Assembly (NCBI GenBank): GCA_040285825.1
Contig: JAUPSS010000002.1
Location: forward strand, 1,922,001 to 1,986,000
DNA length: 64,000 nt
Origin: Eukaryota sp. TZLM1-RC
Lineage: Eukaryota; Protista; Metamonada: BaSk clade
Direction of reading: 5' to 3'
Shown: positions 6,549 through 57,324 of the stretch, piece after piece
Position numbering within the stretch: the stretch's first letter is position 1
Layout: the number at the start of each line of letters is the position of its first letter
Position numbers and translations under genes: made by a program
Notes under the pieces: model-generated
Told to the model about the DNA's origin: nothing
The model's database searches: none
Seen by the model: the letters and a program-made list of their open reading frames with translations, nothing else

Positions 6549-6671
6549 TTGATTTTGTATATTTTTTTCTTCATTTTGTATATTAATTTTTAAGATCCAA
6601 ATAAATATTTTTTATTTTAAATTCCACTTATATAGTTCCAAATTATACTAAACGAAACAATTAAACTAAAA

Positions 6672-9959: not shown

Positions 9960-10330
9960 TTTCAAATGCTGAAAGTTTCAAAATCAAACAATACAATGTA
10001 CCTTTATCCAAATTGTCCAGCCAACAGCATAAAAAATACAAATTGTATCCATTTGTATTTTCTCTATTTGGTTCACCTGCTCCCACAGCTGCAGGTTCTT
10101 TGGCAGATTTTGAAATGATTGTAAAGAGAACTAACAGAAATTTCAACAGATTGTATTGGCAAAATAGAATTGTGTTTTCTATTTTTGAGGGGATGTTGAA
10201 GATGGTGTTTGCTGCTTTGCTTTCTCTTGGATCTCACTATGAGAGAGTTGCATCTAGTTATTTTGTTTTGGGAGAGATGGATTATTTAGATGTTGATTTA
10301 TATGTTTTCAGATAAATAAATAAATAAATT
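9960..10330 (+). mobile_element. 3' fragment of RLE non-LTR family B
   Basis: YKLYPFVFSLFGSPAP..WQNRIVFSIF..DYLDVDL matches the ORF at 44463-45113; (TAAA)n tail. Confidence 0.8.
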
Positions 10331-33049: not shown

Positions 33050-33863
33050 TCAGATACTTCACTGTTTGTAACCATTGTACCACGAAGATTTGGACTGTGT
33101 GCTACTAATGAAGCGTTTGTAACAAAAATGAGACTATATTTGAATATTCCCATTAATCAATTATTATCCATTGAAATATGTATTTGTTCGAATTCACCAC
33201 AGCTTGCGTCATGCTCTGAATTGTTCGAAATTGATAACTTATCGTTCTTCATTACTTGATGCTGCAAGAGACACTGTTTTTAATATGGCACGAACTGCAA
33301 GAATTTCGTGTATCAAAGAGCCTCTGCTGAAGGAAACATTATCATTGAATAATTTTGGTTCTGATGATAGAGATGATGTATACTGTGATTGGATTGAGAA
33401 TTCTGAAACTGTTGTTGACTTTGTCTCCTGTAATGTTGCAAGTGACACTTTGGTTCAAAGAAGAAAACTTAATCCTGTAACTGTTCTTGAATTTGAAGCT
33501 AAAGAATAACATAGAAAATATGACAAAGATATCGAAGAGGCTAATGCTGGTAGAAATACACCACTAGTTTTTATTGCTTTGCCATTTTCGATAAACGGAA
33601 GACTATCAGTAGAAGCAGGAATTTTTTTGAATGATTTCCAAAAATGGTTCAAGAAAAAACAATGAAAAGATTTGATAATTTTTTATGGCGTTCTCGGATT
33701 CAATTTGCCATTTAAAATAGATTACCTCGTTTTTTCAATCGAATTAGAGAAGCTGTAGCTAGACAGCAAGCAGATCAAGATTTTGTAGAAGAAATCTTGG
33801 TTCAATGATTTTCTTCCCATTAGTTATGAGTTAATTTTATTAAGTGTGCAAGATAAATAAAAA
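33050..33863 (+). mobile_element. Family A RLE unit, copy A3
   Basis: Same sequence as A1/A2 with frameshifts; AATAAAAAA tail. Confidence 0.85.
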
Positions 33864-33927
33864 AGTAATTCTTTACTCAGTTCTTTGTTTTGAAAATCCA
33901 AAACAATTCCGGGCTACTACTTCAAGA

Positions 33928-36284: not shown

Positions 36285-38150
36285 TCTACTTGGTAGAGGG
36301 AAAACTTTGGTGTCGATTTTCGCAACCGCTGTCCAAATGATGTTGCTTTCTTGATTTCTACAAGTAATAAATATTTAAGAGACCTCGAAAATGCTCTTGA
36401 TTGTTTACCCCTTGACGTTTGAAGTAAATGTTTTCCCGAAAATGTACAGGAAATACCACTTAGAACGCTAGGAAATTTGAGGTATTGTGTTAAAAAATTG
36501 CAACAAATCAAAAACCTTCGATGCTTCATTTGGCAGAATAACGTGCCTCATAATTTGATTTGCAAATGTAGTTCAAAAATTTCTATTTATTGAACATGCA
36601 CACTTAATTAAATTAATTCATAACTGATGGGACGACTATCATTGAACTCAGATTTCCTCTACAAAATGTTGATCTGCTTGCTGTCTAGCTAAAGCTCCTC
36701 TTATTCGATTGAAAAACCGAGGTAATCTATCAATAATGGCAAATTGAATCCGAAAACGCCATGAAACAATATCAAATCTTTTCATTGTTTTTTCTTGAAC
36801 CATTTTTTGGAAGTCATTCAAAAAAGTTTCTGCTTCAACTGATAATCTTCCGTTTATCGAAAATGGGAAAGCAAAAAAAAACTACCTGTGTATTTCTATC
36901 AGCATTAGCTTCTTCAATATCTTTATCATATTTTTTATGTTTTTCTTTTGCTTTAAAATCAAAAGCACTGACAGGATTAAGTTTTCTTCTGTGAACCAAA
37001 GTATCATTTGCAACATTACATGAGACAAAGTCAACAATAGCTTCAGAATTATCAATCCAATCACAGTATACATCACCTCTATCATCAGAACCAAAATTAT
37101 TCAGAGAAAGTGTTTCCTTCAGCAGGGGCTCTTTGATACACGATATCCTTGCAGTTTGTGCCATATTGAAAACAGTGTCTCTAACAGCATCATGTAATGA
37201 AGAACGATAAGTTATCAATTTAGAGCAATTCAGAACATCGCGCAAAGTGAGTTGGGGTGAATTCGAACAAATACATTGTTCTTTTGATAATAATTGATTA
37301 ATGGGGATATTCAAATATAATCTCATTTTTGTTACAAATGCCTCATTAGTGGCACACAATCCAAATCTTCGTGGTACAATGGTTACAAAAAGTGAAGAAT
37401 CTAATGACTTGTTTTCACAAACACCCTTTTCTAAAAACAATGAGTGAAGATCTTGATTTGAAACAGTCGAACCTAAATTTAAAATTTCTCCAAATCTTTT
37501 TCATACGTCAACACTTTGTAACTTTCCGATCAAAAGTCCATGATGCAATGAGGGATCAACTCTGTTGTATGTCAAGATCACACAGAATTGTCTCCTATTT
37601 AGAACCTTTACTTTCTCGTTTGGTTGATGAAGATATTTTGAATTCTTTTTGTCGAACTAGAGGTGATTTAATGCTTGAAGGTCTTGAAGGGACGACCATC
37701 ATTAATGATGTTACATCAACTTATGTGTGTAAGAATACTTTCATACCATTAGCACAGTCAAAACACAAGAATCCGCTGTTTGTTGCCGAAAATTCTAAAA
37801 TTGCTAAATATAAAGCAAACTTGCGATCTTTGAATGCTGAATCTCACACTCATATCTCCTTTGTCCATTTGCTTTTTCCTGACATGGTACGCTTGGACCA
37901 CTTGCTTTATCTTTTTTGGATGATTTTGTTGAAATTGTAAACAACGTACAGGAAGAATTTTTGACAAAACAATTCGGCAGAAAATGTTATTTTCAATTTT
38001 TAAATGTCGTTCCCTTATTGTCTTCTGCTTCATTATCTCTTGGTCGCTTTTATGAAGGAAAAAATTCTGCCAATCCCTTTTGGCTGATTTGATATATGAA
38101 GATTGAGAAGTTTAATTTGTGTTGTTTAGTTTCTCAGTAAATTAAATTTT
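36285..38150 (+). mobile_element. Family B (subfamily B2) fragment with nested, inverted family A copy A4 (36585-37480, minus strand)
   Basis: The B peptide ..PHNLICKCSSKIS is interrupted and resumes as FVTFRSKVHDAMRDQL; AAAATTTCT is duplicated at 36576-36584 and 37481-37489. Confidence 0.8.
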
Positions 38151-40289: not shown

Positions 40290-40502
40290 AGTTAAAAATT
40301 GTACCAAAAACAATGAAATAAGAACTTTGAACTATACTGTGAATTTCTATCAAAACGCACTTCTGGCTTTTGACCAATTCATGTAATCTTGATAGACGTT
40401 AAGCTTACTTTAGTTCTACCACTATATGATATCACGATCAAATGATAGTTAAAGCAGCAACATCACAATACGCGTACAGGTACGCAATACATGGAATGAC
40501 AC

Positions 40503-42174
40503 TTATCTACGGGGTCTCCGGAACGCCTCAGGTCTTTCATTGTAGTAGTGCTCACTTATGGCAATCTCCAGTTGGTTTCTGGAAGCTGAGATGTCCCTCG
40601 ACCAGAGTGTCTGGCATTGAGGGCAAACAAACTTTTCATTGTTTACCCTTCCATCATCGTGATACAACTTTTGATTGAATACCTTACAGCAATTCGTTTT
40701 GGCAGATGTGTAGAATTCATCTCCATTAGGCTTCACATATGTAAAATGTTTCTGAATCTCCTTCAAAAAGCGCTTCCTTGGGGGTTTTCACAGATTGTCT
40801 TGATGGCCCATCACCTCCACTACCAAACCAAATTATGGTTTCTCTTCCATTAGCCATTAGTTTAATGTTTTCAATAAATCCCATTATTCTTTTTTGCCCT
40901 CTTATAAAGAAATCAAACTTGTTGCGCCGCAGGACTCGGCGATCTCCATTTATCAACAGTTGGTCTAATATAGTTCTCTGACGGAAGTCGGGATTGCTGA
41001 TTTCTTCCTGTGTCGGTACCCACATCAAGGCATTGCTATTTCATTAAGACATTTGTGTAAATTCTTAGCAAATTAGCAATTTGGTGATGCATGGGTCAGG
41101 ACCGGTGGGTGAACGATCTTCCTTGCCTTTGGATTCAGAGCAAGGCCCGAAAGTTGATGATCAACATTGTTATTATCAATTCTTGATCCAATTGAATAAC
41201 CACACAAATTTTTGTGATTAGGATCAATTACACAAAATGAATATTCAATTTGATCAACTGGCGGAGGCTCATAGGCGTCGTCAGTTCTTCGACGTTGCCT
41301 TGGACGGACCTGTTGTTGAAGTCTAGAGTTTCGCTTCCGACTCTTTGCAGGTATTTCGAGTTCCCCACTGGCTATGGTGGTTGCCAATTCTGTGGCTGTC
41401 CGGCGATTTTTATTTTTTTTTCGGGGTAAAGGAAAAAGTGAAGCGGATTGAAACGGCATCTGAACTGATTATGTAAGTCAGAAACTACTTTTTTCTGAAA
41501 AAGGCAAACGGATCTTTCAGCAGACAGTGGTTGGCATTAAAAGAGAGAAAATGCTTTTCCAGTTTTTCACTAAAAGAGATAAAGCCAGGAGAATAACTGG
41601 GGGATGGGGACACGGCATTTCTTCGCATGGTATCAGATGCAATATTTTCCAGAAAGGATAAAATATTTAGCCCAGCAGTGAATAAGAAGGTGATGTTGTC
41701 TGGACTGAGATCAACATTGTCCAGCATCAGCATAGCGTCAAAAAGATGAGGGTCGGCAACCTGCTGAATAAATAGGTCCATTATGTACTCATGGTGACCT
41801 TCATCACACCATGCGCGCACAGAGTCAGGAATAGTGGCTGCAGTCGTGTTCACCACTAATGAAGCATATTTCTTTGGGCAAGGGCACTCAAAGAACGTAG
41901 CCATTGTCCGGAAGAAGTTCAGCTTCCAGGAGACAGGGCCATCAGTAAGTAATTGACAAAAGCTGTTCGCCATTTGCAGTGTACGAAAGCTTCTAATGTC
42001 AGAGTGGCACCAGTTGTCGGTTCCCTTATGAAAACCAATAGGAGGAAACGGCCAGCCAGGTCGGAAAGAGACATCATAAAGTGCGCGATGTGTGACAACA
42101 AAAATGCTCAAACTTGTCCAGATCCAGATCCAGTGGCTTGTGCAACTATGGGTGAACAGAAAAATGTAATTCAT
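40503..42174 (-). pseudogene. Fanzor-like nuclease, 5'-truncated and frameshifted paralog of 54004-55966
   Basis: Four ORF pieces carry VIDPNHKNLCG, LRRNKFDFFIR, WFGSGGDGPSRQSVK, GDEFYTSAKTNCC and CPQCQTLWSRDISASRN..RPEAFRR. Confidence 0.88.
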
Positions 42175-42287
42175 GAGAAATTATGTTAAAAAAAGTGAAG
42201 GAATTTTAAAGTTCTTCAGTATATTGTTTTCTCTGAAGCGTTCGATTTTTTCCTTTTACTAATATTTATCTATCAAACAACTTGTAA

Positions 42288-42510
42288 ATCAACATCTAAA
42301 TAATCCATCTCTCCCAAAACGAAACAACTAGATGCAACTCTTTCATAGTGAGATCCAAGAGAAAGCAAAGCATCTGAAACCATCTTCAACATCCCCTTAA
42401 AAATAGAAAACACAATTCTATTTTGCCAAAACAATCAAAATTTCTATTGGTGCGCTTTTTTATACAATGATTTCAAAATCTGCCAAAAAACGTAAAGCAA
42501 TGGGAGAAAG
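42288..42510 (-). mobile_element. Family B 3' fragment
   Basis: Reverse-complement match to ~10100-10300. Confidence 0.7.
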
Positions 42511-43546: not shown

Positions 43547-44451
43547 AATTTTATTTATTGAATTTGCACACTTGATTAAATTAAATCATAACTAATGGGA
43601 CGACTATCATTAAACCAAGATTTCCTCTACAAAATCTTGATTGGCTTGCTGTCTAGCTAAAGCTTCTCTAATTCGATTGAAAAACCGCGCTAATCTATTA
43701 ATAATGGCAAATTGAATCCGTGAACGCCATAAAAAAATATCAAATCTTTTCATTGTTTTTTTCTTTCACCATTTTTTTGGAAGTCATCCAAAAAGTTTCT
43801 GCTTCAACTGATAATCTTCCATTTATCGAAAATGGGAAAGCAATAAAAACCAGCTGTGTATTTCTATCGACATTTGCATCTTCAATTTCTTTATCATATT
43901 TTCTATGTTTTTCTTTTGCTTTAAAATCCAGAGCAGCCACAGGATTTAGTTTTCTTCTGTGAACCAAAGTATCGTTTGCAACATTACATGAGACAAAGTC
44001 AACAATAGCTTCAGAATTATCAATCCAATCACAGTATACATCACCTCTATCATCAGAACCAAAATTATTCAGAGAAAGTGTTTCCTTCAGCAGGGGCTCT
44101 TTGATACAAGATATCCTTGCAGTTTGTGCCATATTGAAAACAGTGTCTCTAACAGCATCATGTAATGAAGAACGATAAGTTATCAATTTAGAGCAATTTA
44201 GAGCATGGCGCAAAGTGAGTTGAGGTGAATTCGAACAAATACATTTTTCTTTTGATAATAATTGGTTAATGGGGATGTTCAAATATAATCTCATTTTTGT
44301 TACAAATGCTTCATTAGTGGCACACAATCCAAATCTTCGTGGTACAATGGTTACAAAAAGTGAAGAATCTGACGCCTTGTTTTCACAAACACCCTTTTCC
44401 AATAACAATGAGTGAAGATCTTGATTTAAAACAGCCGAGCTGCAAATATTA
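43547..44451 (-). mobile_element. Family A RLE unit, copy A5, inserted in the 3' tail of a family B element
   Basis: 222-aa ORF 43740-44408; TATCAGAAAACTTA is duplicated at 43533-43546 and 44452-44465. Confidence 0.85.
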
Positions 44452-46500
44452 TATCAGAAAACTTATAAATCAACATCTAAATAATACATTTCTCCCAGAA
44501 CACGACAACTAGATGCAACTCTCTCATAGTGAGATTCAAGAGAAAGCAAAGCATCAGAAACCATTTTCAACATCCCCTTGAACATAGAAAACATAATTCT
44601 ATTTTGCCAAATCAATCTGTTGAAATTTTTCTTAGTTTTTCTCTTTACAATCATTTCAAAATCTGCCAAAAAACGTATAACCGTTGGAGCAGGTGAACCA
44701 AATAGAGAAAATACAAATGGATACAAATTGTATTTTGCATGCTGTTGACTGGTCAATTTGGACAAAGGTTCATTGTATGTTTTGGTTTTGAAATTTTCAG
44801 CATTTGAAAGAGGATTATGAATTCCATAATTAGCAAGCCTTTCATTTGCGGCATTACAAGGATCAACAGACATTACATCCATCAAAATGAAGCTTCCATC
44901 TACTCCAGGTAATATAACATCACCTCTATTATTCTTATGAAAATCATCTTCTGCATCAAACAGATTTGACCACAGAGGTTCCAAAAAGGATTCAATTCTA
45001 TGAGACTTACACATACAATATAATTGGTCTCTTACAGCATCGTGAACCTTGCTTCTATAAGAAATAAAATGTTTACAATTTAACAAATCAGTAATTGTAA
45101 TTTTCGAGGACATTTACAAATTAAATTATGAGGTAAATTATCAGGCCAGATAAAGGAACGAAATCTCATATTCAAAGTTATAGGCAGAATCAGTGGAGAG
45201 AGTGCCATAAACTTGAGGAGTTGTTGTTACTAAAGCAGAAGATGTACTATCACACATATCTTGTAAAAGATTTGCAAAAGTCTAACATCAAAATTCAAGC
45301 TTTCAAAAATCTTTGACAATTTTTGTTGAAGCTTTTTACAGCAAAATTGCAAATTGAAAAGAGGTCGGTTCGGAATTTCTTGAATTGATTGGGGAAAACA
45401 TTTGGTCTAGATTTGTGGCGGCAATCTATGGAGTTCACAAAATAACCCATTCAAATATGGACTGCAACTGGGAACTAATAAATGAGAATTTGACGGAAAT
45501 TTAAGAAAAAATTCATAAATAAAATTCTTGCCTCCACCCAAAAATACTGATTGACACCAAATAGAAGATTTTGTAAATCCAAAACCACCCAAATTTGCTG
45601 CCGAAAATAAGTGATTTTTCAACATTCCTGTTTTTACCTCCAATAAATCAGAAAAAAATTCTGTTCTCAATGACTTAAAGGAACGACAAATATTTAATGT
45701 TATAGCAGGAGCACAAGATCTCAAAATGTGGGTTATTTTCCCAGTATAGCAACTTTTCAATACAACAAATTCGATATGTTTTTCTAAATCCAAGGAAGAA
45801 ATTAAATCAAGTTCAATTTTCATTTTTCCAAAGTAACTTGTAATTCATTCTGAATTTGAGGCACATTTCCTAACCAACAACCAAGGAACTTAAAAGCATC
45901 ACTACTATAATTAGTAAAAGGGACATCAGAATCGTTTATCACAAGATTCTGAGCACAAAAGCCAATCAGAAGGCATTTGCTCGCATTAAGATGAAGCCCA
46001 ATATTTTCATATGAATCGGCAATTTCTCGAGCAACCAATTCTAGTAAATCTAATGAACCAATCAAGGATATATCATCCATATAAGCAACTATTTTTAGGG
46101 AAGAATATTTTTGCTGAATGATATCTCAAATTTTGTGAATAGCTAAACAAAACAAGAAAGTACCTAAAGAATCACCTTGTTTTACACCGGAAGATGAATT
46201 TAAACAAAATGAATTAAAAATTAAATTTAATTCTGTACCATAAAAATGATAGAAATTAATTGGAAGCTCAGGAAAATCAGATTTAATTTCTTCAAAAATT
46301 GCTTTTCGTTTCACAGAATTAAAAGCATTTTTGAAGTCGAGATCAAAAATAAAATTATTATCCTCTGAATTAAAAACAGTATCAGAGGCAAGAGCAGCAA
46401 CAGAAGCACCATCATTTGTTTTTATTCCAAATTGATGAGGATTTAAAAATTTAGAAGCTTTGTCTTTGACACGATCAAAAACAATCGATGCCAACAAACT
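44452..46500 (-). mobile_element. CRE/R2-like non-LTR retrotransposon (family B): degenerate reverse transcriptase, CCHC and RLE
   Basis: PHQFG, LDFKNAFNSV, GVKQGDSLG, AYMDD, FKFLG, LGGFG, then VHDAVRD..RGDV; multiple stops and frameshifts. Confidence 0.9.
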
Positions 46501-47619: not shown

Positions 47620-49100
47620 TATCCTGTGAACTCGATAGATTGCCACTACAAATCTGGACCAAATGTTTTCCCCAATCAATTCAAGAAATTCCAAACCGAT
47701 CTCTTTTTAATTTGCAATTTTGCTGTAAAAAGCTTCAACAAAAATTGTCAAAGATTTTTGAAAACTTGGATTTTGATGTTAGACTTTTGCAAATCTTTTA
47801 CAAGATATGTGTGATAGTTCATCTTCGGCCTTAGTAACAACAACTCCTCAAGTTTATTGCACTCTCTTAACTGATTATGCCTGGCTTTGAATATGAGATT
47901 TCGCTCCCTTATCTGGCCTGATATTTACCACATAATTTAATTTGTAAATGTTTTCAAAAAATTACAATTACTGATTTGTTAAATTGTGAACATTTTATTT
48001 CTTATAGAAGCAAGGTTCACGATGCTGTAAGAGACCAATTATATTGAATGTGTAATTCTCATTGAGTTGAAATATTTTTTTGGAACCTCTGTTGTCAAAT
48101 CTGTTTGATACTGAAGATGATTTTCATAAGAATAATAGAGGTGATGTTATATTACCTGGAGTAGATGGAAGTTTGATTTTAATGGATGTAATGTCTGTTG
48201 ATCCTTGTAATGCCTCAAATGAAAGACTTGCTAATTATGGAATTCATAATCCTCTTTCAACTGTGTTTTATTTGGCCCAATAACGTTCTTCATAATTTGG
48301 TTTGCAAATGTGGATCAAAAATGATCAAAAATTTCTCCAAATCATTTGTTTAACTGTAAACATTTTATTACTTTTCGATCAAAAATCCATGATGCAGTTA
48401 GATCAGTTCTATTGTATGTCAAAGTCTCACAAAATTGTCTCCTATTTGGAACCATTACTTTCTCGTTTGGTTGATGAGGACATTTTGAATTCTTTTGGTC
48501 GTAACAGAGGTGATTTAATGCTTGAACGACTTGTTGGGACCACCATCATTAATGATGTTACATCAACTGATGTGTGTAATAATTCTTCCATACCATTAGG
48601 TCAGTCAAAACACAAGAATATGCTGTCTGTTCCCGAAAATTCTAAAATTGATAAATATAAAGCAAACTTGCGATCTTTGAATGCTGAAACTCACACTCAT
48701 TACTTCCTTTGTTCAGTTGCATTCTCCCCACATGGCTTTCTTGGAGCAATTGCTTTTTCTTTCTTGGATGATTTTATGGAAAGTGAAACAACGTACAGGA
48801 AGGGTTTTTGACCAAGGGGTAGAAGAGAATTGTATTTTCAATTTTTGTAGGTGTTGATCCCTTATTATCTAATGTGTTATTAGTTTTTGGTCAATTTTAT
48901 GAAAGATCAACACTCAGTCAATTATTCCCACTTATTCAATTTGCCATTATTAATTGATTACCTCGGTTTTTCAATCGAATTAGAGAAGCTTTAGCTAGAC
49001 AGCAAGCAGATCAAGATTTTGTAGAGGAAATCTTGGTTCAATGATAGTCGTCCCATTAGTTATGAGTTAATTTAATTAAGTGTCCAAATTCAATCAATAC
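47620..49100 (+). mobile_element. Stacked RLE fragments: family B (47620-48260), B2 (48260-48900), family A tail (48934-49100)
   Basis: Direct similarity to 44800-45430, 37500-38050 and the family A 3' end, respectively. Confidence 0.78.
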
Positions 49101-49708
49101 AAATACTTATTGAAGGATCATATTCAAAAACAAAATTCATCAAAAATACATGTCTGAAACGAATATTCAAACAATGCCCTTACCAAAAATTTAATATCAA
49201 CAGAAAAAGTTGGAAAAATAGATTTAAACAAATTTTATTAAAAACTAATGGTAATGAACTGCTTTTAACACTTCAAAGTAAAAATAAGGACTCAGAAAAC
49301 ACAAATGAGCTGGATGAACCACCGAAAAAGAAAAGAAGATTAAATAAAGAAATGAAAAGTGATCCTGATGCCAACAAAACCAGAGAAATACAGTTGAAGG
49401 GCACTAAAAAAATGCCCCATCGAAGACGCAGACATCAAGTCGAAATGTTACTTGAAAGACCTTGTTATTGGTGTTGATCTGGGCCAATGTAGATTATGTG
49501 GTTCCTTCTTAAATGATAATCAATGTGGAGTTATCTCTTGTCCAACTGGCAGAAGATACATGACAAAACCTTCACCCAGTAAACTCTCTACAACCAATAT
49601 TCCGTTCAAAATTTCAACCAATAATTGAACCATTGGAATTTGGTCAGGAGGGAAGTGTACTTGGAAAGTAATCACCAGAAATGGAAAATAATTAAATTTG
49701 ATAACCGC

Positions 49709-50811
49709 TGATGCCGTTAGGCAGATGAACACAGGAAGGAGAGAGAGAAATCTGTTGTTTATTAATAAAACTGATTCATAAATGAGTATCACGTCATCAG
49801 TCGAAATACAAAGAAACCTACTAATTCAATTTGAGTTCAACAACAACACTACTTTTTCCCACTTTTCTGAGGACAAATACAGTACTGGCTCAATAGAGGG
49901 AGGATATGGGGTTTGTTAAACTCTTTGGTGCATCGTTTGTGTGACACAAATAATTTACCTCATGTTTGATTTTAGATGGACAATCACGGGAGATGTGTCC
50001 AGGCTTGTGGCACTTGAAGCACGATTGATTTTTTAAATCCTGAGAGCGCCAAGAGGACCTCGTTTTAGTGCCAGCCGTACGTTCCACATCATTCACTGAG
50101 GTTTTGAAACCACGAGTCCATGAAGCAACCCTAGAGCAGTCCAACAGCTCATCAGTAGTGGTTTCGACAAGAGAGTGAAGATCTGGGAATACATCATCTC
50201 GAATTCTCGCTAGTAGAGAACGTTGAAGACCTACGGGAAGAATTCCTCTGGCAAATCGATTCAGAAAAGCTGTGTCTGGTAACTTCAGTCCGGAAGCCCT
50301 ACTCTTTACCTGGAGGAAACGTCGCAGGTAACAGGACATACGTTCTCGGACGTCACCAATACGGACATCAAGCTTCAGTTCTGACATAGCCAGACTAAAA
50401 TCTTCGTACGTGGCGAACGATACGACAGATTGAAGATGTCTAAGAAGAACATCGTCACTGGAAGAGACGTCGGATTTCTGGAGAGATAGGGACTCTAACA
50501 GAAAAGAATCGACCAAGAGTCTTGCTGGAACAAGCTCTTTCTTAGAAGTCACAGAAGAATAGATCTTCCACTCTTGTAGGAACAAGAGAACACTTTCAAC
50601 TTTCATGGAAGAAAGAGACGGGAGGTTGACAGAAGGAACAGTCATCTGAAATAAGAAGGGCCAATAATTATTGATGCCGTTAGGCAGATGAACACACGAA
50701 GGAGAGAGAGAAATCTGTTGTTTATTAATAAAACTGATTCATAAATGAGTATCACGTCATCAGTCGAAATACAAAGAAACCTACTAATTCAATTTGAGTT
50801 CAACAACAACA
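49709..50811 (-). mobile_element. Complete non-autonomous gag-only LTR retroelement (1103 bp)
   Basis: 140-bp LTRs at 49709-49848 and 50672-50811 (TG..CA, one mismatch seen), 4-bp TSD CCGC, polypurine tract AGAAAAGTGGGAAAAAGTAG, putative PBS TGGCCCTT. Confidence 0.93.
49890..50645 (-). CDS. gag: Gag-like protein with CCHC zinc knuckle
   Basis: 251-aa intact ORF containing CFKCHKPGHISRDC, lying between the LTRs. Confidence 0.85.
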   Translation of the reverse strand: MTVPSVNLPSLSSMKVESVLLFLQEWKIYSSVTSKKELVPARLLVDSFLLESLSLQKSDVSSSDDVLLRHLQSVVSFATYEDFSLAMSELKLDVRIGDVRERMSCYLRRFLQVKSRASGLKLPDTAFLNRFARGILPVGLQRSLLARIRDDVFPDLHSLVETTTDELLDCSRVASWTRGFKTSVNDVERTAGTKTRSSWRSQDLKNQSCFKCHKPGHISRDCPSKIKHEVNYLCHTNDAPKSLTNPISSLY

Positions 50812-51626
50812 CCGCAGACGAAAAGAGAAACGCTTCCGAGAGAGTCTCAACAAATTTCAAAGGCTGACTGGACATCCTGAACAACTCTACCTTGCTGTGG
50901 CTTCTGCTAGTTTCCCTTCTCATTGCCGAAAAGTCAATCGATATGGATCAGCAAGGGCTTTCAGAAAATGGTTGTGTTATCAAAAGGACGTGAAGCACTT
51001 GTCAACCAGTGAATTTAATACAAGCAAACTGTCCAGTTGTTGCATGGCGGAGAATATTCAAGCAGGCTCATGGCAGATACGTATTTGTATTTGTCAAATA
51101 TTATATGACAGAGATATTTCCGCTGCAAAAATATTCAAATTAAGAGGAAACGGAATTGTGGCCGGATCGATACAGTTGTCCAGAAGCTCTGTTGAGGAGA
51201 TGAATGGGTAACCTGAGCATACAGAAACAAAAACTTTTGAAAAACTGATATTATATTTTCATTTTTTTATTTTATTTTTAATTTTTTTTGAAAAACTTTT
51301 GAGACCGATCTACAAATCCTTAGTAACATTTGGTAGATCCACTTAGATACATCAAGTCGCGAGGCTTTGTTCTGTGAAAGCAGTAGGTGTATTTAAGTGA
51401 GGTAGCCCATTGATAAAGATCAAAATTGTCTTTGTCAAATGACGCTACATGTTTCTTACAGCCTGTGAGTAGACATTGAGAAAGTTGAAAACAGGAGTGA
51501 AATTCACAATAGTACATGAACATGAGTTGTTTGGTTAATGATCTAAAATTGTATCACAATGGTTTTCAAACAATGGCCTTACCCTTTATTTCATTTGCAA
51601 CTACTTTACATTTAAGAAATGAGTAA

Positions 51627-52184
51627 ATGGTAGATGACACTCTTCATCATTCCTTCTCCTGTCCTGTTTGTTGGGATACAATGTACAAACCGATCCTTCT
51701 AACTCCATGTGGTCATACAGTCTGCAGTTTGTGCTTTTCTAGGCTCAATCAACGTTGTCCTCTCTGTCGAGAATCAATAGGGTCATCTGTGGATAACCTA
51801 CACCTCAGAAATGTGATTGAAGATTATCTATCCTCTAGCAATGCTGTTTCGTCCCGTAATGCTGGAATACAACGCCAGCTATCCAGTGTTGAACATCGAC
51901 TAAACAGTGTTAAACATAGAATGATTGAAACTTCTAAAGAAAAGGACGAAGCAAGACATAACATTGATGTTTACAGAAAAGTTGTCAATCACTTTATGGA
52001 GAAAGAGAAGGAACTCTTAGTTGAGTTGCAACAAGTGAGAGATGGCCTGAATGAATCTAATTCAAAACTTGATACCTATGTCAATCTACAACGGAATCTA
52101 GAAGTTCAAGAGACCAAACTGGGTAATTTGCAATCCTCTTTACAGAAAGAATTCAATAAGTTAACCTTATTGGCAAGGAAATAG
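51627..52184 (+). CDS. RING-finger (C3HC4) plus coiled-coil protein
   Basis: CPVC..PCGHTVCSLC..CPLCR. Confidence 0.88.
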   Translation: MVDDTLHHSFSCPVCWDTMYKPILLTPCGHTVCSLCFSRLNQRCPLCRESIGSSVDNLHLRNVIEDYLSSSNAVSSRNAGIQRQLSSVEHRLNSVKHRMIETSKEKDEARHNIDVYRKVVNHFMEKEKELLVELQQVRDGLNESNSKLDTYVNLQRNLEVQETKLGNLQSSLQKEFNKLTLLARK

Positions 52185-52864
52185 GTTGTGTATCCTGATC
52201 AATAATCAATACTACCAAAGTAGATGCCTTTTGTTTGAATTAATCTGCATCAATACATGATTATCATTTTATAAATCTCTCTTAAGTATCTTTCAGTTTT
52301 ATTTGGTCTATTCTCAACCTCACCCTGACTTGGCTTGCGGTTAGTCAAATTCACAAGGAGAACACACTTCTATTTGGAGGACACAGAATCAAAGAGAATG
52401 GGTTTTCAACTTCTATTTAATTGTTAATGAAGTTTAAAAACCATTCTCTTTGTTCATAATTAAACAAATGATGTATTCATCACGACGAATAAAACCTTCA
52501 TTATTCATCAATTTACAATCATTTGACTGATATAAAAAGTTTTTAAAGGGAAATTAATAGATAATAGATTAAGATTATTCATCTCATGCTTAACAAAAGT
52601 GGAGAACGGCATTTGTCTTCATTGTAATGCTTCAATTAAAGTTAAATGTCATCAGAGCAAACCTGTTGAACGATACTGTTAAACTTTTCGAAATCTTGAA
52701 CTGTGGTTGATTTTTATGTTGAATACAATTCCCCCAAACATTCCCAATTTCAGTTTTCCCCCAAAACTTCCCCAAACAATATGCCCCAAACAATATGCTA
52801 TTGTGGATATAATCCCATTGCCCAACCTTTTGTTATGTCTCTTTCTGCTCGCTACATCAATTCT

Positions 52865-52980
52865 GGTGCTTTGCTTTCTTTTGGATCTGACTATGAGAAA
52901 GTTGGAGCTAGTGTTTTTGTTTTGGAAGAGATGGATTTTTTAGATGTTGATTTATAGGTTTTCAATAAAAAAATTAAAAA
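52865..52980 (+). mobile_element. Family B extreme 3' end with A-rich tail
   Basis: ALLSFGSDYEKVGAS..MDFLDVDL-stop followed by AATAAAAAA. Confidence 0.65.
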
Positions 52981-53081
52981 AAATATACACACCTTAAAGT
53001 GAGAAAACATAAAACCATAAAACAACCATAAACCAACCATAAAACCATAAAACAACCATAAACCAGATCTTGTAAACCAGA

Positions 53082-53981
53082 TCATATGAATGCAGTAGAA
53101 GACTCAGAGTCCCTGGCAAAGGTTCGAAATAAATCCAGTATTCGATCACCATTCAGCAATAGATTTTGAGACAGTAGGGGAGGGGGGTCAGAAAAAGGAC
53201 GGAAGCAAGTGACGAGGGTAGAGAGACGTTGATAAAGAGAAAGAAGGAAAGATTGGGGCAGGGTTGAGGTTGTTAGTTTGTACAAAAGGGAGACAATTAG
53301 TTGCCGATCATGATTCCATGATGGGGTGATGAATGATGGTTTAATTGAGCAAAGGAGGATTACTATTGCCGAAGCATGGGATAAGTCACAATCAGTGTTG
53401 AGTAGTGAAAACCAGTGTTTGGAAAAGTTTTGGAACTGAGGAAGAAAACATGCAGGACGTAGACTCTTCTGTAGCTTTAATACAAGGTGTGGAACATCAG
53501 GAATAGAAGAGAGGGAAGACAGCCAGACTGATTCATATGAAGTCCAGGCAGCCACAAAAGAACTTGAGGGAAGGGACCTATGACAATGTAGTAACAGCTC
53601 TGTGTTGATCATTCTACAAAATAAGTGCCCCTGCATAGTAGAGACTTTTATATTTGATTTGATTCCAGAATCAATCTTGTATTCATGGTTATATTCCATA
53701 GAGGAAGGAAGAAAAAAAAACATTACTTAAAATAAAAGTGATTCTCAATTTCCGACATAAAGAGTGGTAGTAGCTGCAAGCAAGGATTCGTAGGAGAAGG
53801 TTCGTAGTAGAGTAAGTGATGAAATGTTGTAAGTGATGAAATGAAATTCAATTACGAATCTGGGCAATGATGACAACCCAACCAAACTCCACTCACCAAC
53901 TTTTGTAACATGTAGTTCTTGTCTAAAGAAAGGAAAATATTCAGAAAGTAATCTTGAACGATATGTCTCATTAATAAACAC
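53082..53981 (-). CDS. Hypothetical protein (exon structure unresolved)
   Basis: 213-aa and 78-aa ORFs with gene-like GC content; no recognised domain. Confidence 0.4.
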
Positions 53982-54003
53982 TTGTAACTAATTTTACTTT
54001 GAA

Positions 54004-55966
54004 TTGACAACTATAAGATTGATTGACTTCAACAAATTTTCAATTTTAGGAAACAAATTTTCAATAATTTCTGACTGTTTCTGTTCTGTGTTGACTGCCA
54101 GGGATAACGTTCTACAAACTACAACTGTGGGAGCGTCTGTCAACCAGTTCTTCGACTCAGATGCACAAGAAGCAATGGAACGCCAGTTCCAAGTTCTTGC
54201 TAGTATTGGAGCTCATGCTACTCACCTAGTACGACTCTTTGTGCTCCAATACCCAGAACACTCAGTGTGGCTTACTCAAAGCCAGTTCTGGAGCCTCTGT
54301 TTCGACTTTGTTTGCCAAAGTGAGCCTAAACAAAGGAGGCCATTTGAAAACCATCCTTTGGTTTACCAAGCGCTGCAACACCTTGTTCAGTACTTTTGGC
54401 CTTGGCGACCGCTGAATGAAACCACCTCAACCGACGGTGGTAGATTTTGGTGTCTTTCCACTCTTCTTGGCAGTCGAGCCATCCAACTGCGAGAAGCCTT
54501 TTGTCAGTTGCTTGCTGACGGCCTTGTCGTCTGGAAACGCAATATTTTCAAAAACTGTGCTCAGTTTCTAAATTGCCCCTGGCCCAAGAAATACGCCGAC
54601 TGTGTACTTCAAGGGATTCAGCCAGATGAGTCAATTTTACAATGGTATCAAGAAATACACCAGCATATCTTGGTCCATTGGCTCAATATGACAGCAAACG
54701 CCTATATTGGTGGCGGTCAAAATTTGTTCGAAAATTCAATAAGAAACGAACGGTTTCCCATCAACATGGAGTCTGCTGCAACAATCGTTCAACCTGGCTT
54801 GAACATTTTATCTTTTTTAGAAGATAACTGCCCTGATGTGATGAAAAGGCACTCTCTCTCCACTGTCCAGTTGGTCTTCATGCCTCTGCAGCTTGACTAA
54901 AGAAGCAGAAGCTTATTTCACAAAACTAAATGCAAACAAAGAGCTTCTGAACAACCCTTATCGGTTCTTTAATAAATCGAAATTTATTAACTATACCATT
55001 TTTTCGAATGGTGATTCCTTGCGGTTTACGTTTACCCAGAAGGAAAGAAAAACTTATAATAGGCCAAATAAAGCGGAATTTGAGCCCAGGCGAGCCTCTG
55101 GAAATTATGATTTTCATAACTCTGAAAGGAAACGAAAATCCAATTTCCATAGAACAGCAAATCCAGAGAGAAGACCGCGGTTACCAGTGGAACAACAGCC
55201 CAATTACAGAGATCCTGATGAAAATTTGTTTTTTGTAGCCATTGATCCCAACCAAAGCAATCTTTGTGGTTGGACTGCTGGTTCTTTCCGAAATTCTGCT
55301 ACTGTTTTTGAACGTTCTGGACTGCTACTGAATCCAAAAGAACGAAGACTAAATCACCCTCCTCCTCTCACTCAAGCAACTCCTAACACTTATTCCGCTC
55401 AGAGCTTCCAAGAGTATCTGATTGAAATAAGTTTACCTTATGTTCCTGAATCTGAGGAAGAGCCTGAATATGCTTCAATTATGTCTGGAAATTTGCAGCG
55501 TGGTGCAAGAAAAAAGCTGAGAAGAAATAAGTTTGATTTCTTCATACGAAGACAAAAGAGACTAACTAGTTTTATTAACAAAATTAAACGCTTATCTGAA
55601 GGAAGAAACACTATAGTTTGGTTCGGCAATGGCGGTGGTGGTCCATCTCGTCAATCTGTGAAATCCCCCCGAAAGAGATTTCTCAAACAAATCAAAAAAC
55701 ACTTTGGAAGCGTCAAAGTCGGGGACGAGTTTATGACCTCAGCAAAAGTGAATTGCTGTAAGGTCTTTCATAGAAAGATCTATCATGATGACGGAAGGGT
55801 AAATAACGCTAAGTTCGATTGCCCTCGATGTCAGACCAACTGGTCTAGAGACATCTCAGCCTCCAGAAACCAGCTGGAGATTGCAATTAGTGAGTATTTC
55901 ACTGGTACTAGGCCAGAACCATTCAGAAGGCCAAGGCGTGTGAGACGTCTAAGGAGACAGCAGTAG
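54004..55966 (+). CDS. Fanzor-like (eukaryotic TnpB) RNA-guided nuclease, ~600-650 aa, one frameshift at the (CT)n run 54852-54860
   Basis: RuvC-I AIDPN (D 55244), RuvC-II GDEFMTS (E 55727), NCC..CPRC zinc module, RuvC-III SRDISASRN (D 55850), terminal RPEPFRR. Start codon uncertain. Confidence 0.88.
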
Positions 55967-56016
55967 CTGTTTTAATCAACGTATTTCCAAGGTGTTTAGT
56001 GTATACTAACCCTTGG
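55954..56016 (+). ncRNA. Candidate Fanzor omegaRNA scaffold (two hairpins)
   Basis: GAGACAGC-AGTA-GCTGTTTT (55954-55973) and CCAAGG..TTAGT-GTAT-ACTAA.CCTTGG (55987-56016) at the ORF 3' end. Confidence 0.4.
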
Positions 56017-56109
56017 TGCTGAGAAGTTTATACAATTATTAGGGATATTTATTCAATATTCATTTTGTGTGAAATTCTCAGAACTTTTCCTTATAAGCAA
56101 TATTTCTCA

Positions 56110-57324
56110 ATGCCCCCAAAAGAGAAATCCAAGCCCAGACCACATCACAAGAATACTCTCTTCTTCCACTTTGGCAAAAATAAAGATAATGATAATGGTA
56201 AAGCACCATCTCCTATGGAAGAATCTCCATTGTCTAAACCCGAATCTCAACCACCAGTTCAGCCAATTAAAGACTCTTGTATTATAGATATTGACACTGT
56301 TTCCAATTCTCTACCACCTTCTGAACCTTGCCAATCACTCTCTCTTGCAGAACGTTATCCCAATCGCCATTTTCCTGAAGGAACAGTCTTCTACAAAGCA
56401 CCCAGTCAACAACTAACTAAATCACAAGAGACCAACCTAGTTGATTTTATCCTGCACACACCCAATCACAAGAATTACTCTCATTATTACCACTGTTTTG
56501 TGGATGCAACATGTCCAGATCTACCCCATGAACCCATCAAAACTCACAAACGTGATCGACACTTCATCACATTGGGACCAGACAAGAAAGTTTTTAAATT
56601 ATTTTCTTTTCATGATGACTTTTCTAGACCACCATATTTTGGAACAATTTCTCGGTCCTCCACCGTCATTACTCCATTGAAACCCTTGAGTAAAGATCCT
56701 GGTTTAGACTATGATATTGACTCAGCCGAGGAATGGGAAGATGAACAGGATGCAGAAGATCTTGTGTCTGGGGATGATAAGGAAGACGAGGAAAGCAGCG
56801 ATGAAGAAGATGTAGGGTTTGTGGTGGATGATGGGTATCTGTCTAAGGATGAGGGAAGTGATGAAGAAGAGGGCCTGAAATCCAGAGAAGTCAATGATGA
56901 TGACGTGGAGGGTCAGAAATCAGTTGTTGTGGGTCCATTCTTTGCTTCTGATGGAGGGACAGTACCACCCGAACTTCAAAATTTGGCAATTGTCACTTTT
57001 TTATCCACACCAGTCAACATTAGGCGATCTTCTGCACTTGCGCAAGCTTATGGTAACACTTCTCCATGGCCCTTGGAACATCTGAGACTTTTGGTTCAAC
57101 TTATAATGCAAAATTCCAACAACAAAATTGAAGTTCTTGTTAGTTCTTTTTTGAGTACAATTGAAGAACAAAATGCTTCATTAGAGGGTTCCTCATTACC
57201 ACAAAAGAAGTATACCAAGAAGGCAATACGGCATGTTATTGGAAACTTATTTAACAAGGAAGGTTCAGGAAAGTCCACTCATTATATTGTTAAAGATGAA
57301 ATTAGAGAAGAACTTGGTCTCTAG
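56110..57324 (+). CDS. CHAF1A: Chromatin assembly factor 1 subunit A (Cac1/FAS1/p150)-like, compact
   Basis: KLFSFHDD..RPPYFGT..KDPGLDYDIDSAEEWE..GFVVDDGYLSKDEG, plus a C-terminal winged-helix-like region. Confidence 0.85.
   Translation: MPPKEKSKPRPHHKNTLFFHFGKNKDNDNGKAPSPMEESPLSKPESQPPVQPIKDSCIIDIDTVSNSLPPSEPCQSLSLAERYPNRHFPEGTVFYKAPSQQLTKSQETNLVDFILHTPNHKNYSHYYHCFVDATCPDLPHEPIKTHKRDRHFITLGPDKKVFKLFSFHDDFSRPPYFGTISRSSTVITPLKPLSKDPGLDYDIDSAEEWEDEQDAEDLVSGDDKEDEESSDEEDVGFVVDDGYLSKDEGSDEEEGLKSREVNDDDVEGQKSVVVGPFFASDGGTVPPELQNLAIVTFLSTPVNIRRSSALAQAYGNTSPWPLEHLRLLVQLIMQNSNNKIEVLVSSFLSTIEEQNASLEGSSLPQKKYTKKAIRHVIGNLFNKEGSGKSTHYIVKDEIREELGL

Follow-up and report, generated by a model that had tools for sequence, protein, structure and literature searches.

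Fungi, algae, amoebae and animals are the groups in which Fanzor1 nucleases are known. The Fanzor1 structures that we used for comparison are those of SpuFz1 from Spizellomyces punctatus (8GKH, 9CEU-9CEZ), PpFz1 from Parasitella parasitica and GtFz1 from Guillardia theta. The RuvC domain of Fanzors is rearranged, the canonical RuvC-II Glu being replaced by Gly or Pro and an alternative conserved Glu lying downstream (Jiang et al. 2023), and the C-terminal half of members of the TnpB/Fanzor superfamily carries the motif D-X(125,275)-[TS][TS]-X-X-[zinc finger]-X(5,50)-RD (Bao and Jurka 2013, PMC3627910). Spu-1, GtFz1 and others come without a transposase (Saito et al. 2023), while CRe-1, CRe-2 and CRe-3 of Chlamydomonas reinhardtii are Fanzor1-carrying, non-autonomous Helitron2 elements (Bao and Jurka 2013, PMC3627910).

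The stretch of DNA analysed here (the window, 64,000 nucleotides) comes from the flagellate Skoliomonas litria, strain TZLM1-RC. It holds, at positions 52693-56081, what is very probably a single insertion of a young mobile element, non-autonomous and present in many copies, whose sole recognisable gene encodes a Fanzor1-type, TnpB-derived nuclease, predicted to cut DNA under RNA guidance. The element would thus represent a divergent Fanzor1 family in a metamonad lineage for which none has been described so far; our literature search returned no paper joining Fanzor with metamonads. Like Spu-1 and GtFz1, it presents a lone gene without a transposase. Unlike Spu-1, it has no inverted repeats, and its copies have one fixed right end, left ends that are truncated and target-site duplications (TSDs) differing in length. 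With bacterial TnpB of IS200/IS605 and IS607 (for instance ISDra2 TnpB, 8H1J) and with Fanzor2 (ApmFz2, 9B0L), the Skoliomonas protein shares the RuvC fold, the zinc-ribbon TNB domain and an RD..A..N motif, and a guide RNA would likewise be expected at the element's 3' end. In contrast to both, however, the protein is much larger owing to its N-terminal half and is Fanzor1-like by profile E-values and Z-scores alike; unlike in TnpB systems, the element is accompanied by neither TnpA nor a serine recombinase.

A young repeat unit with one recognisable gene

Aligning the genomic copies, a step proposed in the first-pass annotation of this DNA, revealed a common right end and varied left ends, which together delimit a 3.39-kb unit (Table 1). 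The copy in the window is collinear with, and 94-98% identical to, those at loci L001, L002 (two copies) and L004-L008; the overlap with L003 covers 54602-56081 only. The fetched set comprises at least ten copies of 94-98% identity, spread over five contigs of at least 0.9 Mb at unrelated sites with eukaryotic genes on their flanks. Stop codons, frameshifts and internal deletions occur among them. The family has been recently active in this metamonad lineage.

The upstream neighbour of the unit is a RING-finger gene at 51627-52184. The earlier description of the Fanzor gene as sitting tightly between two host genes was mistaken on this side, as the unit begins at about 52693 and takes in the minus-strand open reading frames (ORFs) at 53082-53981, which belong to the repeat and not to the host. 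One candidate for a second gene or transposase among them, a 213-aa ORF at 53082-53723, had no Pfam match and no Atlas match at or above 0.9, and we rejected it since its relatives are element copies only and deletions or truncation cut the ORF elsewhere. Similarly, a 115-bp module was considered as a family-wide left end and discarded, being missing from the sister subfamily locus L009 and adjoining other repeats.

No transposase was found inside the 3.39-kb unit, and neither was a terminal inverted repeat. The only end-to-end inverted match (52716-52733 with 56042-56059, 18 nt, 78%) is at chance level, doing no better than many chance pairs; one arm sits 24 bp away from the 5' end and the other within the loop of the 3' hairpin. 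The initial impression that neither feature is visible therefore stands, and "transposase-free" is a true, but not an unusual, attribute (Saito et al. 2023).

The gene lies in gene-dense surroundings and is oriented like its downstream neighbour, as a domesticated host gene might be. Set against this are the at least ten near-identical copies at unrelated sites on five contigs with eukaryotic flanking genes, the TSDs that some of them carry, the stops and frameshifts among copies, and a fold nearest to eukaryotic Fanzor1 rather than to TnpB. Taken together, these observations make both domestication and contamination with bacterial TnpB hardly credible. The former had been raised as a possibility and does not survive the finding of a multi-copy family, 94-98% identical, at different insertion sites, with three copies bearing their own TSDs.

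Table 1. Features of the Fanzor1 repeat unit and its flanks (positions in the window)
Feature	Position	Strand	Basis or remark
3.39-kb repeat unit, one copy; very probably a non-autonomous Fanzor1 element	52693-56081	+	Left end full length
TSD, left copy, AACTTTTC, 8 bp	52682-52689	+	Followed by filler GAA (52690-52692)
5' region without recognisable gene	52693-54099	+	No Pfam and no credible Atlas match for its minus-strand ORF
115-bp module within 5' region	52861-52981		Also in other repeats
Tandem repeat within 5' region	53004-53065		
Lost start codon, AGG	54100-54102	+	ATG in the eight other copies covering the site
Fanzor1 pseudogene, N-terminal part, frame 1, WED/REC half	54100-54900	+	hhalign coverage; structural alignment
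(CT)4C run, frameshift site	54852-54861	+	One CT below the read-through state
22-nt GT..AG stretch, "intron" of NCBI model P9112_003065	54870-54891	+	Single solution from gene-model arithmetic
Fanzor1 pseudogene, C-terminal part, frame 2: remaining WED, basic linker, split RuvC, zinc ribbon	54893-55966	+	
RuvC-I, IDPN, predicted catalytic Asp	55241-55252	+	Column at least 90% conserved; aligned to SpuFz1 IDPN
WFGNGGGGPSRQSVK, strand at canonical RuvC-II position, Gly replacing the TnpB Glu	55619-55663	+	
GDEF followed by TS, relocated Glu, predicted catalytic	55721-55732	+	At least 90% conserved, invariant in alignment A6
Variant zinc ribbon, NCC(KVFH)...CPRC	55751-55831	+	Family alignment
RuvC-III, SRDIS, predicted catalytic Asp	55844-55858	+	RD pair at least 90% conserved
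Structured 3' untranslated end, two hairpins, conserved terminal motif	55967-56081	+	z-score -5.5 for 55860-56100
TSD, right copy, AACTTTTC; also first bases of the would-be guide	56082-56089	+	Directly after right end

Profile searches and predicted folds point to Fanzor1

The window locus was searched as two separate pieces, never frame-joined. Its C-terminal piece matched PF07282, the Cas12f1-like TNB domain (formerly OrfB_Zn_ribbon), with an E-value of 9.6e-6 and 26.1 bits, that is 0.2 bits below the Pfam cut-off of 26.3; NCBIfam gave a weak match to IS200_TnpB (E 1.4e-3). PF07282 was matched at E <0.01 by seven out of eight family members, and its cut-off was passed by eight of the ten distant relatives scanned. 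A phmmer search of 1.84 billion proteins yielded 99 matches, the distant ones being 580-860 aa long and carrying PF07282. The relatives sampled at E <1e-9 all came from three Skoliomonas genomes.

Searched against PDB sequences with phmmer, the C-terminal piece found chance matches only (E >0.4), and a profile built from the family alone found nothing significant in the PDB (best E 0.14). Because the family-only profile reaches no solved structure, the sequence link to named Fanzors runs via unnamed metagenomic intermediates. An alignment confined to Skoliomonas (A1) matched an outsider alignment of Fanzor-like proteins (A6) in hhalign with a probability of 99.94% and an E-value of 2.6e-36 over 537 columns. 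A6, in turn, aligned to SpuFz1 over its full length at E 1.6e-66, followed by PpFz1 (5.7e-49), GtFz1 (3.4e-46), Fanzor2 (6e-12) and TnpB (1e-4).

Complementarily, we examined the predicted folds of two proteins, the database model of the window locus (P0001) and a natural intact paralog (P0142). The AF2 model of the locus's annotated protein has a pLDDT of 77, and its top seven matches in Foldseek and VIA are all Fanzor1 structures (E 4.8e-10 to 2.4e-5, Z 14.5-16), ahead of TnpB 8H1J (Z 12.7, 149 residues, 21% identity) and Fanzor2 9B0L (Z 12.2). For the P0142 model (pLDDT 85.4, pTM 0.79), the top seven are again Fanzor1 structures, at E 4.6e-14 to 1.8e-11. Their alignments span 456-512 residues and score Z 18.1-21.1, compared with Z 14.3 for the next-best family and Z 11.4 for TnpB. 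Full-length structural matches of the predicted folds were obtained with solved Fanzor1 structures only, and the alignment to SpuFz, PpFz and GtFz starts as early as residue 3-5. The predicted RuvC core also superimposes on bacterial RuvC (Z 11.5-12, rmsd 3.1-3.4, 134-141 residues). At Z 18-21, the intact paralog thus shares with the solved Fanzor1 proteins a full-length architecture of WED/REC, split RuvC and zinc ribbon, with an identity of only 11-15% in the structural alignments.

Sequence profiles and fold together make it well supported that the locus encodes a TnpB/Fanzor nuclease of Fanzor1-like type, bearing out an identity that the first-pass annotation had read from motifs. Both lines of search that it had suggested led to the same place, profiles from the family through A6 to SpuFz1 and structures to Fanzor1, over the full length in the case of P0142. 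The Skoliomonas family is a real but divergent member of the known Fanzor family. Of the earlier phrase "undescribed protist Fanzor lineage", the divergence holds, as the blank PDB search with the family-only profile illustrates; the kind itself, however, is known Fanzor1.

A rearranged RuvC site and a variant zinc ribbon

All of the hallmarks picked out at first sight (IDPN, GDEF, SRDIS, a Cys module and an RPxxFRR terminus, here RPEPFRR) are indeed present, and in an alignment of 38 relatives the conservation of D, E, RD and CxxC is 90% or higher. Two of the features that had been considered atypical look less so in the comparison with known Fanzors. IDPN is also what SpuFz1 has at the aligned position. 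The GGGGPSRQSVK loop does exist, but it occupies the canonical RuvC-II position, at which Fanzors have Gly or Pro in place of Glu. The Gly of WFGNGG in this region is invariant and aligned to SpuFz1 VVMGDWS, and GDEF, whose Glu lies 34 residues downstream of that Gly, is aligned to SpuFz1 LDEYKTS. The Skoliomonas protein thereby displays the Fanzor1 rearrangement, with Gly at canonical RuvC-II and the Glu moved into DE(F/Y)xTS.

The spacing agrees with the superfamily motif as well: 164 residues separate the Asp of IDPN from the TS of GDEFMTSAK, and CPRC is followed by RD after a gap of 5 residues. SRDIS is aligned to RDINAAKN, a motif found in LaTranC and TnpB, and both the W.RD motif and the RP..F.R C-terminus are shared with Fanzor1.

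The third oddity, the NCC form of the zinc finger, proved real and family-wide. In contrast to the solved Fanzor1 proteins, and to the C4 finger (CxxC...CxxC) that the superfamily motif places directly after TS-x-x, another residue stands in for the first Cys (Val in the window copy), and an adjacent Cys/His pair is present instead (NCC or NCH). The resulting family pattern, NC[C/H]K..H...CPxC, offers four possible ligands with non-standard spacing. Distant relatives have the consensus CxCC...CxxC.

The window copy is probably a pseudogene of a family with intact members

Two ORFs cover the gene, at 54004-54900 (frame 1) and 54893-55966 (frame 2), with the frame change confined to 54849-54897. 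They are one gene, broken by the loss of 2 bp in a CT run. The prediction that adding one CT would fuse them is confirmed by natural copies: L001 and L005, which carry the extra CT, read through as HSLSPLSSWS.C.CSLTKE, while eight out of ten copies are in the (CT)4 state. The longer run of L005 is pure. The gap-free match of the restored segment to NAVSPSPSYSPGFISFSEK in the paralog at 41 kb, reported along with this prediction, is likewise real.

Beyond the CT run, the window copy has lost its start codon (Table 1), at which the family protein models begin with MDNVLQ..., and differs from the family majority at 16 non-synonymous positions, private or shared with a minority. Because of the AGG start, the 2-bp deletion in the CT run and the 16 amino-acid changes, we classify the window copy as a pseudogene, and "near-intact" was an overstatement.

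In NCBI annotation, by contrast, the gene is intact: model P9112_003065 (589 aa) treats the 22-nt stretch as a true micro-intron and starts at an internal Met at 54175. The stretch is bounded by GT..AG and is 3n+1 long, at least five other copies have NCBI models with the same splice, host genes are annotated with introns of 25-31 nt, and eight of the ten copies are in the state that needs the splice. Three host introns of 28-31 nt, however, show an ACTAAT/ACTCAC branch-like motif 5-8 nt before the AG, which the stretch lacks. Moreover, the residues that the skipped bases encode are conserved in the genus and line up with a conserved part of the SpuFz1 WED domain. The WED domain is predicted with a pLDDT of about 50-60 in the spliced model and of about 90-95 in the read-through paralog, a comparison confounded by the 25 N-terminal residues that the spliced model lacks. 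In yet another copy, a 1-bp deletion is bridged by a 29-nt "intron" that deletes the catalytic IDPN, so the pipeline evidently invents such introns. A genuine micro-intron is consequently very improbable, and the 22-nt "intron" is most likely an annotation artefact. The Skoliomonas Fanzor gene is hence without a credible intron, unlike the CRe genes with their 5-10 exons, and the public annotation of this genome masks frameshifts with invented micro-introns.

A different objection is that the true locus reads through and that the frameshift arose by error, during assembly or polishing, at a dinucleotide run in a multi-copy repeat. The assembly was made from error-prone long reads with subsequent polishing, the lesion alters a (CT)n run by 2 bp, and the CT states disagree with the copy tree, the pairs window/L001 and L003/L005 each being mixed, as noise would give. 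Slippage mutation, though, accounts for this tree pattern equally well. Eight copies in different contexts share the same state, yet L005 is longer, although a systematic under-call should have affected it too. We regard an error as unlikely, and even a corrected run would leave the window copy without an ATG.

As regards the suggestion that the nuclease is possibly still active, it fails for the window copy, which has neither a start codon nor an open frame, but activity may persist in the family, to judge from its reading frames. An intact copy does exist elsewhere in the same genome, namely P9112_012553 with an uninterrupted ORF of 621 aa, and TZLM3-RCL holds the intact ORFs RCL1_004782 and RCL1_004020. 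With these natural genes to hand, a repaired version of the window sequence is unnecessary.

A probable right-end-anchored spread and a structured 3' end

The right end is identical in all copies, ...GAAATTCTCAG, with no tail. Three copies have their left end at 52693-52701 and the others are truncated on this side, giving seven distinct left ends. Clear TSDs were found in three out of nine copies, with lengths of 8, 10 and 13 bp, whereas anchored matches in 72 mismatched flank pairs, used as a control, did not exceed 6 bases. One to three filler bases stand at the 5' junction, and the bases preceding the duplication are TTTG, CTTG and GTTA (n=3).

These features closely resemble those of CRe-1/2/3, in which 3' ends are nearly always intact and 5' truncation is frequent. 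Their TSDs, of variable length (7-19 bp), are found for the most part on truncated copies, with a few additional bases after the 5' one; there are internal deletions, and families are young, with about 98% identity between copies. The resemblance does not extend to every detail. The pre-duplication bases in Skoliomonas only loosely resemble the TTTT of CRe (n=3). Helitron2 elements have asymmetric terminal inverted repeats, set off from the 5' end by 0-2 bp and from the 3' end by 20-30 bp (PMC3627910), but neither such repeats (8-15 bp) nor a 5' hairpin were convincingly found at the ends of the Skoliomonas unit. No RepHel was seen within the window or the fetched loci, nor did the Skoliomonas loci fetched yield an autonomous Helitron whose termini match.

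Spread of the element would accordingly be anchored at the right end, leaving 5' truncations and variable-length TSDs, rather than proceed by cut-and-paste with inverted repeats, and the mobilising machinery would be supplied in trans. The mechanism could be Helitron2-like one-ended rolling-circle copying, as for CRe-1/2/3, or target-primed reverse transcription. A fixed 3' end, 5' truncation, variable TSDs and 5' filler are the classical marks of the latter, and the fixed right end, graded truncation, TSDs of 8-13 bp and 1-3 filler bases seen here would all fit copies retroposed by non-LTR retrotransposon machinery instead of a Helitron-like DNA mechanism. The right end of every copy, however, lacks the poly(A) or simple-repeat tail of a retroposon, and a hairpin followed after about 10 bases by a fixed ...CAG end is more Helitron-like. 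Furthermore, the same marks occur in the Fanzor1 elements of Chlamydomonas, and these have termini that agree with verified Helitron2 elements (PMC3627910). We rate retroposition as less likely than not. The unexplained pattern noted in 2013 for Fanzor1 elements, with the 3' end kept, the 5' end lost and TSDs variable, recurs in the Skoliomonas family, whose host is a very distant eukaryote, and the role of Fanzor for its element thus becomes testable by comparison.

The segment between the stop codon and the right end is a candidate omegaRNA scaffold and/or cis-acting right end. Its two-hairpin layout is similar in four out of five other lineages, folded singly, with L011 showing no clear fold. 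A MAFFT alignment of six 3' ends, too poor for the purpose, gave a consensus RNA structure with 0 pairs; Rfam had no match on 52600-56300, and a promoter/terminator scan showed no enrichment, its models being bacterial and irrelevant to a eukaryote. The 41-kb paralog has the terminal motif too, and the other Skoliomonas genomes show a GAAAAACACAG-like end. By analogy with solved Fanzor1 complexes, the nuclease would bind an omegaRNA transcribed from this structured 3' end, and the transcript would run past ...GAAATTCTCAG into the flanking DNA as guide.

A more speculative proposal, which we consider improbable, is that the Fanzor1 ribonucleoprotein itself drives the right-end-anchored spread and that the CT run serves as a slippage-prone on/off switch of the nuclease. 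A guide-directed break would then be repaired by inward copying from the element's right end. If true, this would explain the odd pattern shared by the Fanzor1 elements of Chlamydomonas and Skoliomonas as well as its rarity in Fanzor-less Chlamydomonas Helitrons. As regards insertion sites, in 11 out of 12 loci the right end is followed, a few to about 85 bases downstream, by the start codon of a host gene on the same strand.

A frameshifted, dead copy of a Fanzor-like gene

The Fanzor-like gene of the window is carried by two overlapping ORFs that are offset from each other by one base. Frame 1 runs into a stop at 54900 and frame 2 opens no earlier than ~54849, which confines the frame change to 54849-54897; the run at 54852-54861 is (CT)4C. 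Read in frame 2, the window stretch gives ...SPLSSWSSCLCSLTKE, which aligns without gaps to ...SPSPSYSPGFISFSEK of a second, broken Fanzor copy on the window minus strand (41-kb paralog), and IDPN, GDEF, NCC...CPRC, SRDIS and RPEPFRR were each found. While the first-pass annotation was accurate on the split, the CT run, the motif set and the gap-free restored peptide, its description of the gene as near-intact did not hold. Ten copies were aligned: that of the window, one each from the separately fetched loci L001 and L003-L008, and a pair from L002. The alignment revealed AGG at the start codon of the window copy (54100-54102), where the eight other copies covering the site have ATG, as well as 16 non-synonymous and 7 synonymous differences from the family majority. 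Together with the frameshift, these changes identify the window locus as a dead copy.

Intact copies exist elsewhere. L005 holds P9112_012553, an unbroken ORF of 621 aa (JAUPSS010000009.1:280347-282212) set apart from the remaining copies by nothing but substitutions and the in-frame loss of 3 bp in the Gly-rich loop. In TZLM3-RCL, ORFs of 596 aa and 592 aa are likewise intact. The condition under which activity would have been refuted, a lack of intact copies elsewhere, thus does not apply, and the earlier suggestion of possible activity may hold for the family. In a crude count, dN/dS was ~0.49 for single-copy private changes, seven stop codons included, versus ~0.16 for changes common to at least two copies; this contrast, drawn from just 19 shared changes, is compatible with selection acting on the lineages that propagate and with decay once a copy has inserted.

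Sequence profiles and predicted folds point to Fanzor1

Direct evidence on the window copy is thin: Pfam PF07282 scored 26.1 bits (cut-off, 26.3), NCBIfam IS200_TnpB gave an E of 1.4e-3, PDB sequences returned no match, and a profile built from eight Skoliomonas proteins alone reached only LaTranC (E 0.14). The indirect profile chain is strong. Searching 1.84 billion representatives with the C-terminal piece (phmmer) yielded 99 proteins; the distant matches have lengths of 580-860 aa, and of ten that were scanned, eight passed the PF07282 cut-off. An alignment of 24 outsiders from among these distant relatives (A6) was matched by hhalign to the Skoliomonas-only alignment (A1) along 537 columns, covering the whole protein, at a probability of 99.94 % and an E of 2.6e-36. 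On its own, A6 matched the solved Fanzor1 references SpuFz1 (E 1.6e-66), PpFz1 (5.7e-49) and GtFz1 (3.4e-46), compared with 6e-12 for Fanzor2 and 1e-4 for TnpB.

The predicted folds agree. For the AlphaFold2 model of the window locus's database protein (P0001; pLDDT 77), the solved Fanzor1 structures took the first seven ranks (E 4.8e-10 to 2.4e-5 in Foldseek; Z 14.5-16 across 434-487 residues). The model of a natural intact paralog (P0142; pLDDT 85.4, pTM 0.79) matched Fanzor1 structures at E 4.6e-14 to 1.8e-11 and Z 18.1-21.1 across 456-512 residues, with the next family at Z 14.3, and its modelled RuvC core superposes on bacterial RuvC (rmsd 3.1-3.4). These comparisons argue strongly for the TnpB/Fanzor membership proposed at first reading.

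Several traits initially singled out as atypical are normal for Fanzor1. SpuFz1 itself carries IDPN at the aligned position. The GGGGPSRQSVK loop comes after the strand ...VWFGNGG, whose Gly is invariant across three wide alignments, aligns with SpuFz1 ...VVMGDWS and occupies the canonical RuvC-II position, where Fanzors have Gly or Pro for Glu and a compensating Glu further downstream (Jiang et al. 2023). The E of GDEF, 34 residues downstream of this Gly, is the compensating Glu here, so the active site is rearranged in the way known from Fanzors. The variant zinc ribbon noted at first is confirmed, the family showing NC[C/H]K..H...CPxC versus CxCC...CxxC in relatives.

Eukaryota sp. TZLM1-RC is Skoliomonas litria, a free-living metamonad. 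All sampled relatives at E below 1e-9 came from three Skoliomonas genomes, the nearest outsiders being unnamed metagenomic or transcriptomic proteins with ~28-31 % identity across the C-terminal half. Among the papers searched, none joined "Fanzor" and "metamonad", and metamonads are absent from the main text of three large Fanzor surveys (Saito et al. 2023 and Jiang et al. 2023 among them). The locus is therefore a new, divergent Fanzor; the proposal of an undescribed protist lineage stands as to divergence, the sampled close relatives being confined to Skoliomonas, but the superfamily was already known.

A shared frameshift is hidden by an annotated micro-intron

Eight of the ten copies have the (CT)4 state, and a longer run that reads through occurs only in L001 and L005. 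As the copy tree pairs the window with L001 and L003 with L005, run length changed at least twice, which is expected for dinucleotide slippage, or else reflects assembly noise. Relatives at 37-49 % identity from all three Skoliomonas genomes read uninterrupted through the frameshift segment, which in the wide profile aligns with a conserved WED segment of SpuFz1; the reading-through state is thus the functional one.

NCBI protein P9112_003065 ("Eukaryota sp. TZLM1-RC"; 589 aa), to part of which the C-terminal piece is 100 % identical, begins at an internal Met (54175) and bridges the frameshift by a 22-nt GT..AG "intron" (54870-54891). Were this a genuine intron, the gene could be spliced into frame; however, it lacks the ACTAAT or ACTCAC motif that three host introns (28-31 nt) carry just before AG, and elsewhere the annotation masks a 1-bp deletion of another copy by removing 29 nt as an "intron", at the cost of the catalytic IDPN. 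We therefore read the 22-nt intron as an annotation artefact. The WED region also scored lower in the spliced protein (pLDDT ~50-60) than in the reading-through paralog (~90-95), a comparison confounded by the 25 N-terminal residues that the spliced model is also missing.

More generally, NCBI gene models bridge frameshifts of these transposon pseudogenes by invented micro-introns of 22-29 nt, so that protein sets from the assembly overstate the number of intact genes. Annotated host introns start with GTAT or GTTT and place their motif, which we take to resemble the fused branch-point/acceptor motif of other metamonads, 5-8 bases before AG.

The gene resides in a mobile element with a fixed right end

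Copy-to-copy similarity extends past the ORF, from ~52693 to 56081. Every copy has the right end ...GAAATTCTCAG, directly after which the flanks diverge, and left ends are listed in the table. In three copies a target-site duplication begins exactly after the right end and stops 1-3 bases before the left junction, compared with a longest equivalent match of 6 bases among 72 mismatched flank pairs; these truncated copies are therefore separate insertions, truncated at insertion. Multi-copy, with a fixed right end and its own duplications, the locus is a mobile element and not domesticated as had been proposed. No transposase, RepHel or reverse transcriptase was found in the unit or the window's larger ORFs, and no terminal inverted repeat stands out in the unit, as first noted; Fanzors standing alone without a transposase are nothing unusual (Saito et al. 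2023). In the 5' 1.4 kb, no gene is recognisable: the unit itself includes what had been taken for an upstream host gene, and the real neighbour is a RING-finger gene (51627-52184).

The 41-kb paralog belongs to the sister subfamily of P9112_003412 (L009; DNA identity 94.8 %), relative to which it is 5'-truncated, 330 bp into the gene. It is split into at least four frames and has the right end ...GAAATTCACAG at 40337; no clear target-site duplication was seen. A third Fanzor lineage reported at 49100-51211 was undetected by tblastn with either gene piece (E up to 0.01) and, if real, is far more distant.

Features of the window and of the fetched loci (L)
Feature	Locus	Position	Strand	Detail
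ORF, N-terminal piece	window	54004-54900	+	frame 1
ORF, C-terminal piece	window	54893-55966	+	frame 2
41-kb paralog, broken	window	40503-42174; 40334-42087	-	
Left end	window, L002, L004	52693-52701		
Left end	L001	52757		
Left end	L005	53070		
Left end	L008	53185		
Left end	L007	53238		
Left end	L006	53413		
Left end	L003	54602		
Target-site duplication	window	52682-52689 + 56082-56089		8 bp
Target-site duplication	L007			13 bp
Target-site duplication	L008			10 bp
Micro-intron-bridged model	L001	4001-5868		
Micro-intron-bridged models	L006, L007, L008	5001-6867/6868		
Host gene, intron with motif	L008	8153-8639	-	
Host gene, intron with motif	L008	1112-1901	+	
Host gene, intron with motif	L001	6069-7299	+	
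115-bp module, other copies	window	10210-10328	+	
	window	42264-42378	-	
	window	44457-44559	-	
	L007	1114-1222	-	
0.5-0.9-kb repeat	window	1711-2570; 23611-24465; 33050-33864; 36580-37506; 43549-44452		

Proposed copying anchored at the right end

In Chlamydomonas, the Fanzor1-carrying Helitron2 elements CRe-1/2/3, which are non-autonomous, have 3' ends that stay intact, 5' sides that are often truncated, deletions in the interior, target-site duplications that measure 7-19 bp and sit mainly on truncated copies, and a few added bases behind the 5' duplication; for these, a one-ended, rolling-circle mode of copying that starts from the 3' end was proposed (Bao and Jurka 2013, PMC3627910). The Skoliomonas element shows exactly the same insertion syndrome; the asymmetric terminal repeats of Helitron2, however, are not convincingly present. 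Target-primed reverse transcription would leave the same marks, but the right end has no tail. We consequently commit only to right-end-anchored copying, in which the machinery would be supplied in trans; a Helitron2-like route is somewhat more likely than retroposition. What is worth keeping from the locus is this one-ended insertion pattern, the intact paralog, and a frameshift that copies share, that is prone to slippage and that the annotation conceals.

The last 241 bases (55860-56100) are predicted to fold at -74.2 kcal/mol, versus -52.4 +/- 4.0 for shuffles (z -5.5). Five of six lineages, the window's included, are predicted to form two hairpins immediately ahead of the conserved terminal bases; the L011 3' end has no clear fold. 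By eye, three consecutive pairs of the end-adjacent stem differ between the 54-kb and 41-kb copies with pairing kept. Rfam had no match to the 3' region. The predicted structure would fit an omegaRNA scaffold and, equally well, a Helitron-like 3' hairpin.

Neighbourhood of the insertions

Twelve loci have an annotated gene downstream. In 11 of them (window, 56081/56110; L001, L003-L009, L011, L012), the distance from the right end to the start of a same-strand host gene downstream is 0-85 bases; in the exception, L002, it is 303 bases. By eye, the 41-kb copy of the window (40337/40313) shows this arrangement too. The two head-to-head copies in L002 (343-2936, minus; 3762-6983, plus) remain identical past their right ends; they reflect segmental duplication in inverted orientation and not separate insertion. 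A ~115-bp module of the element's 5' region (52861-52981), absent from the sister locus L009, recurs beside other repeats at 82-87 % identity. A repeat family of ~0.5-0.9 kb, whose ORFs have no Pfam match, is abundant, with five copies in the window and more in L003, L004, L008 and L009.
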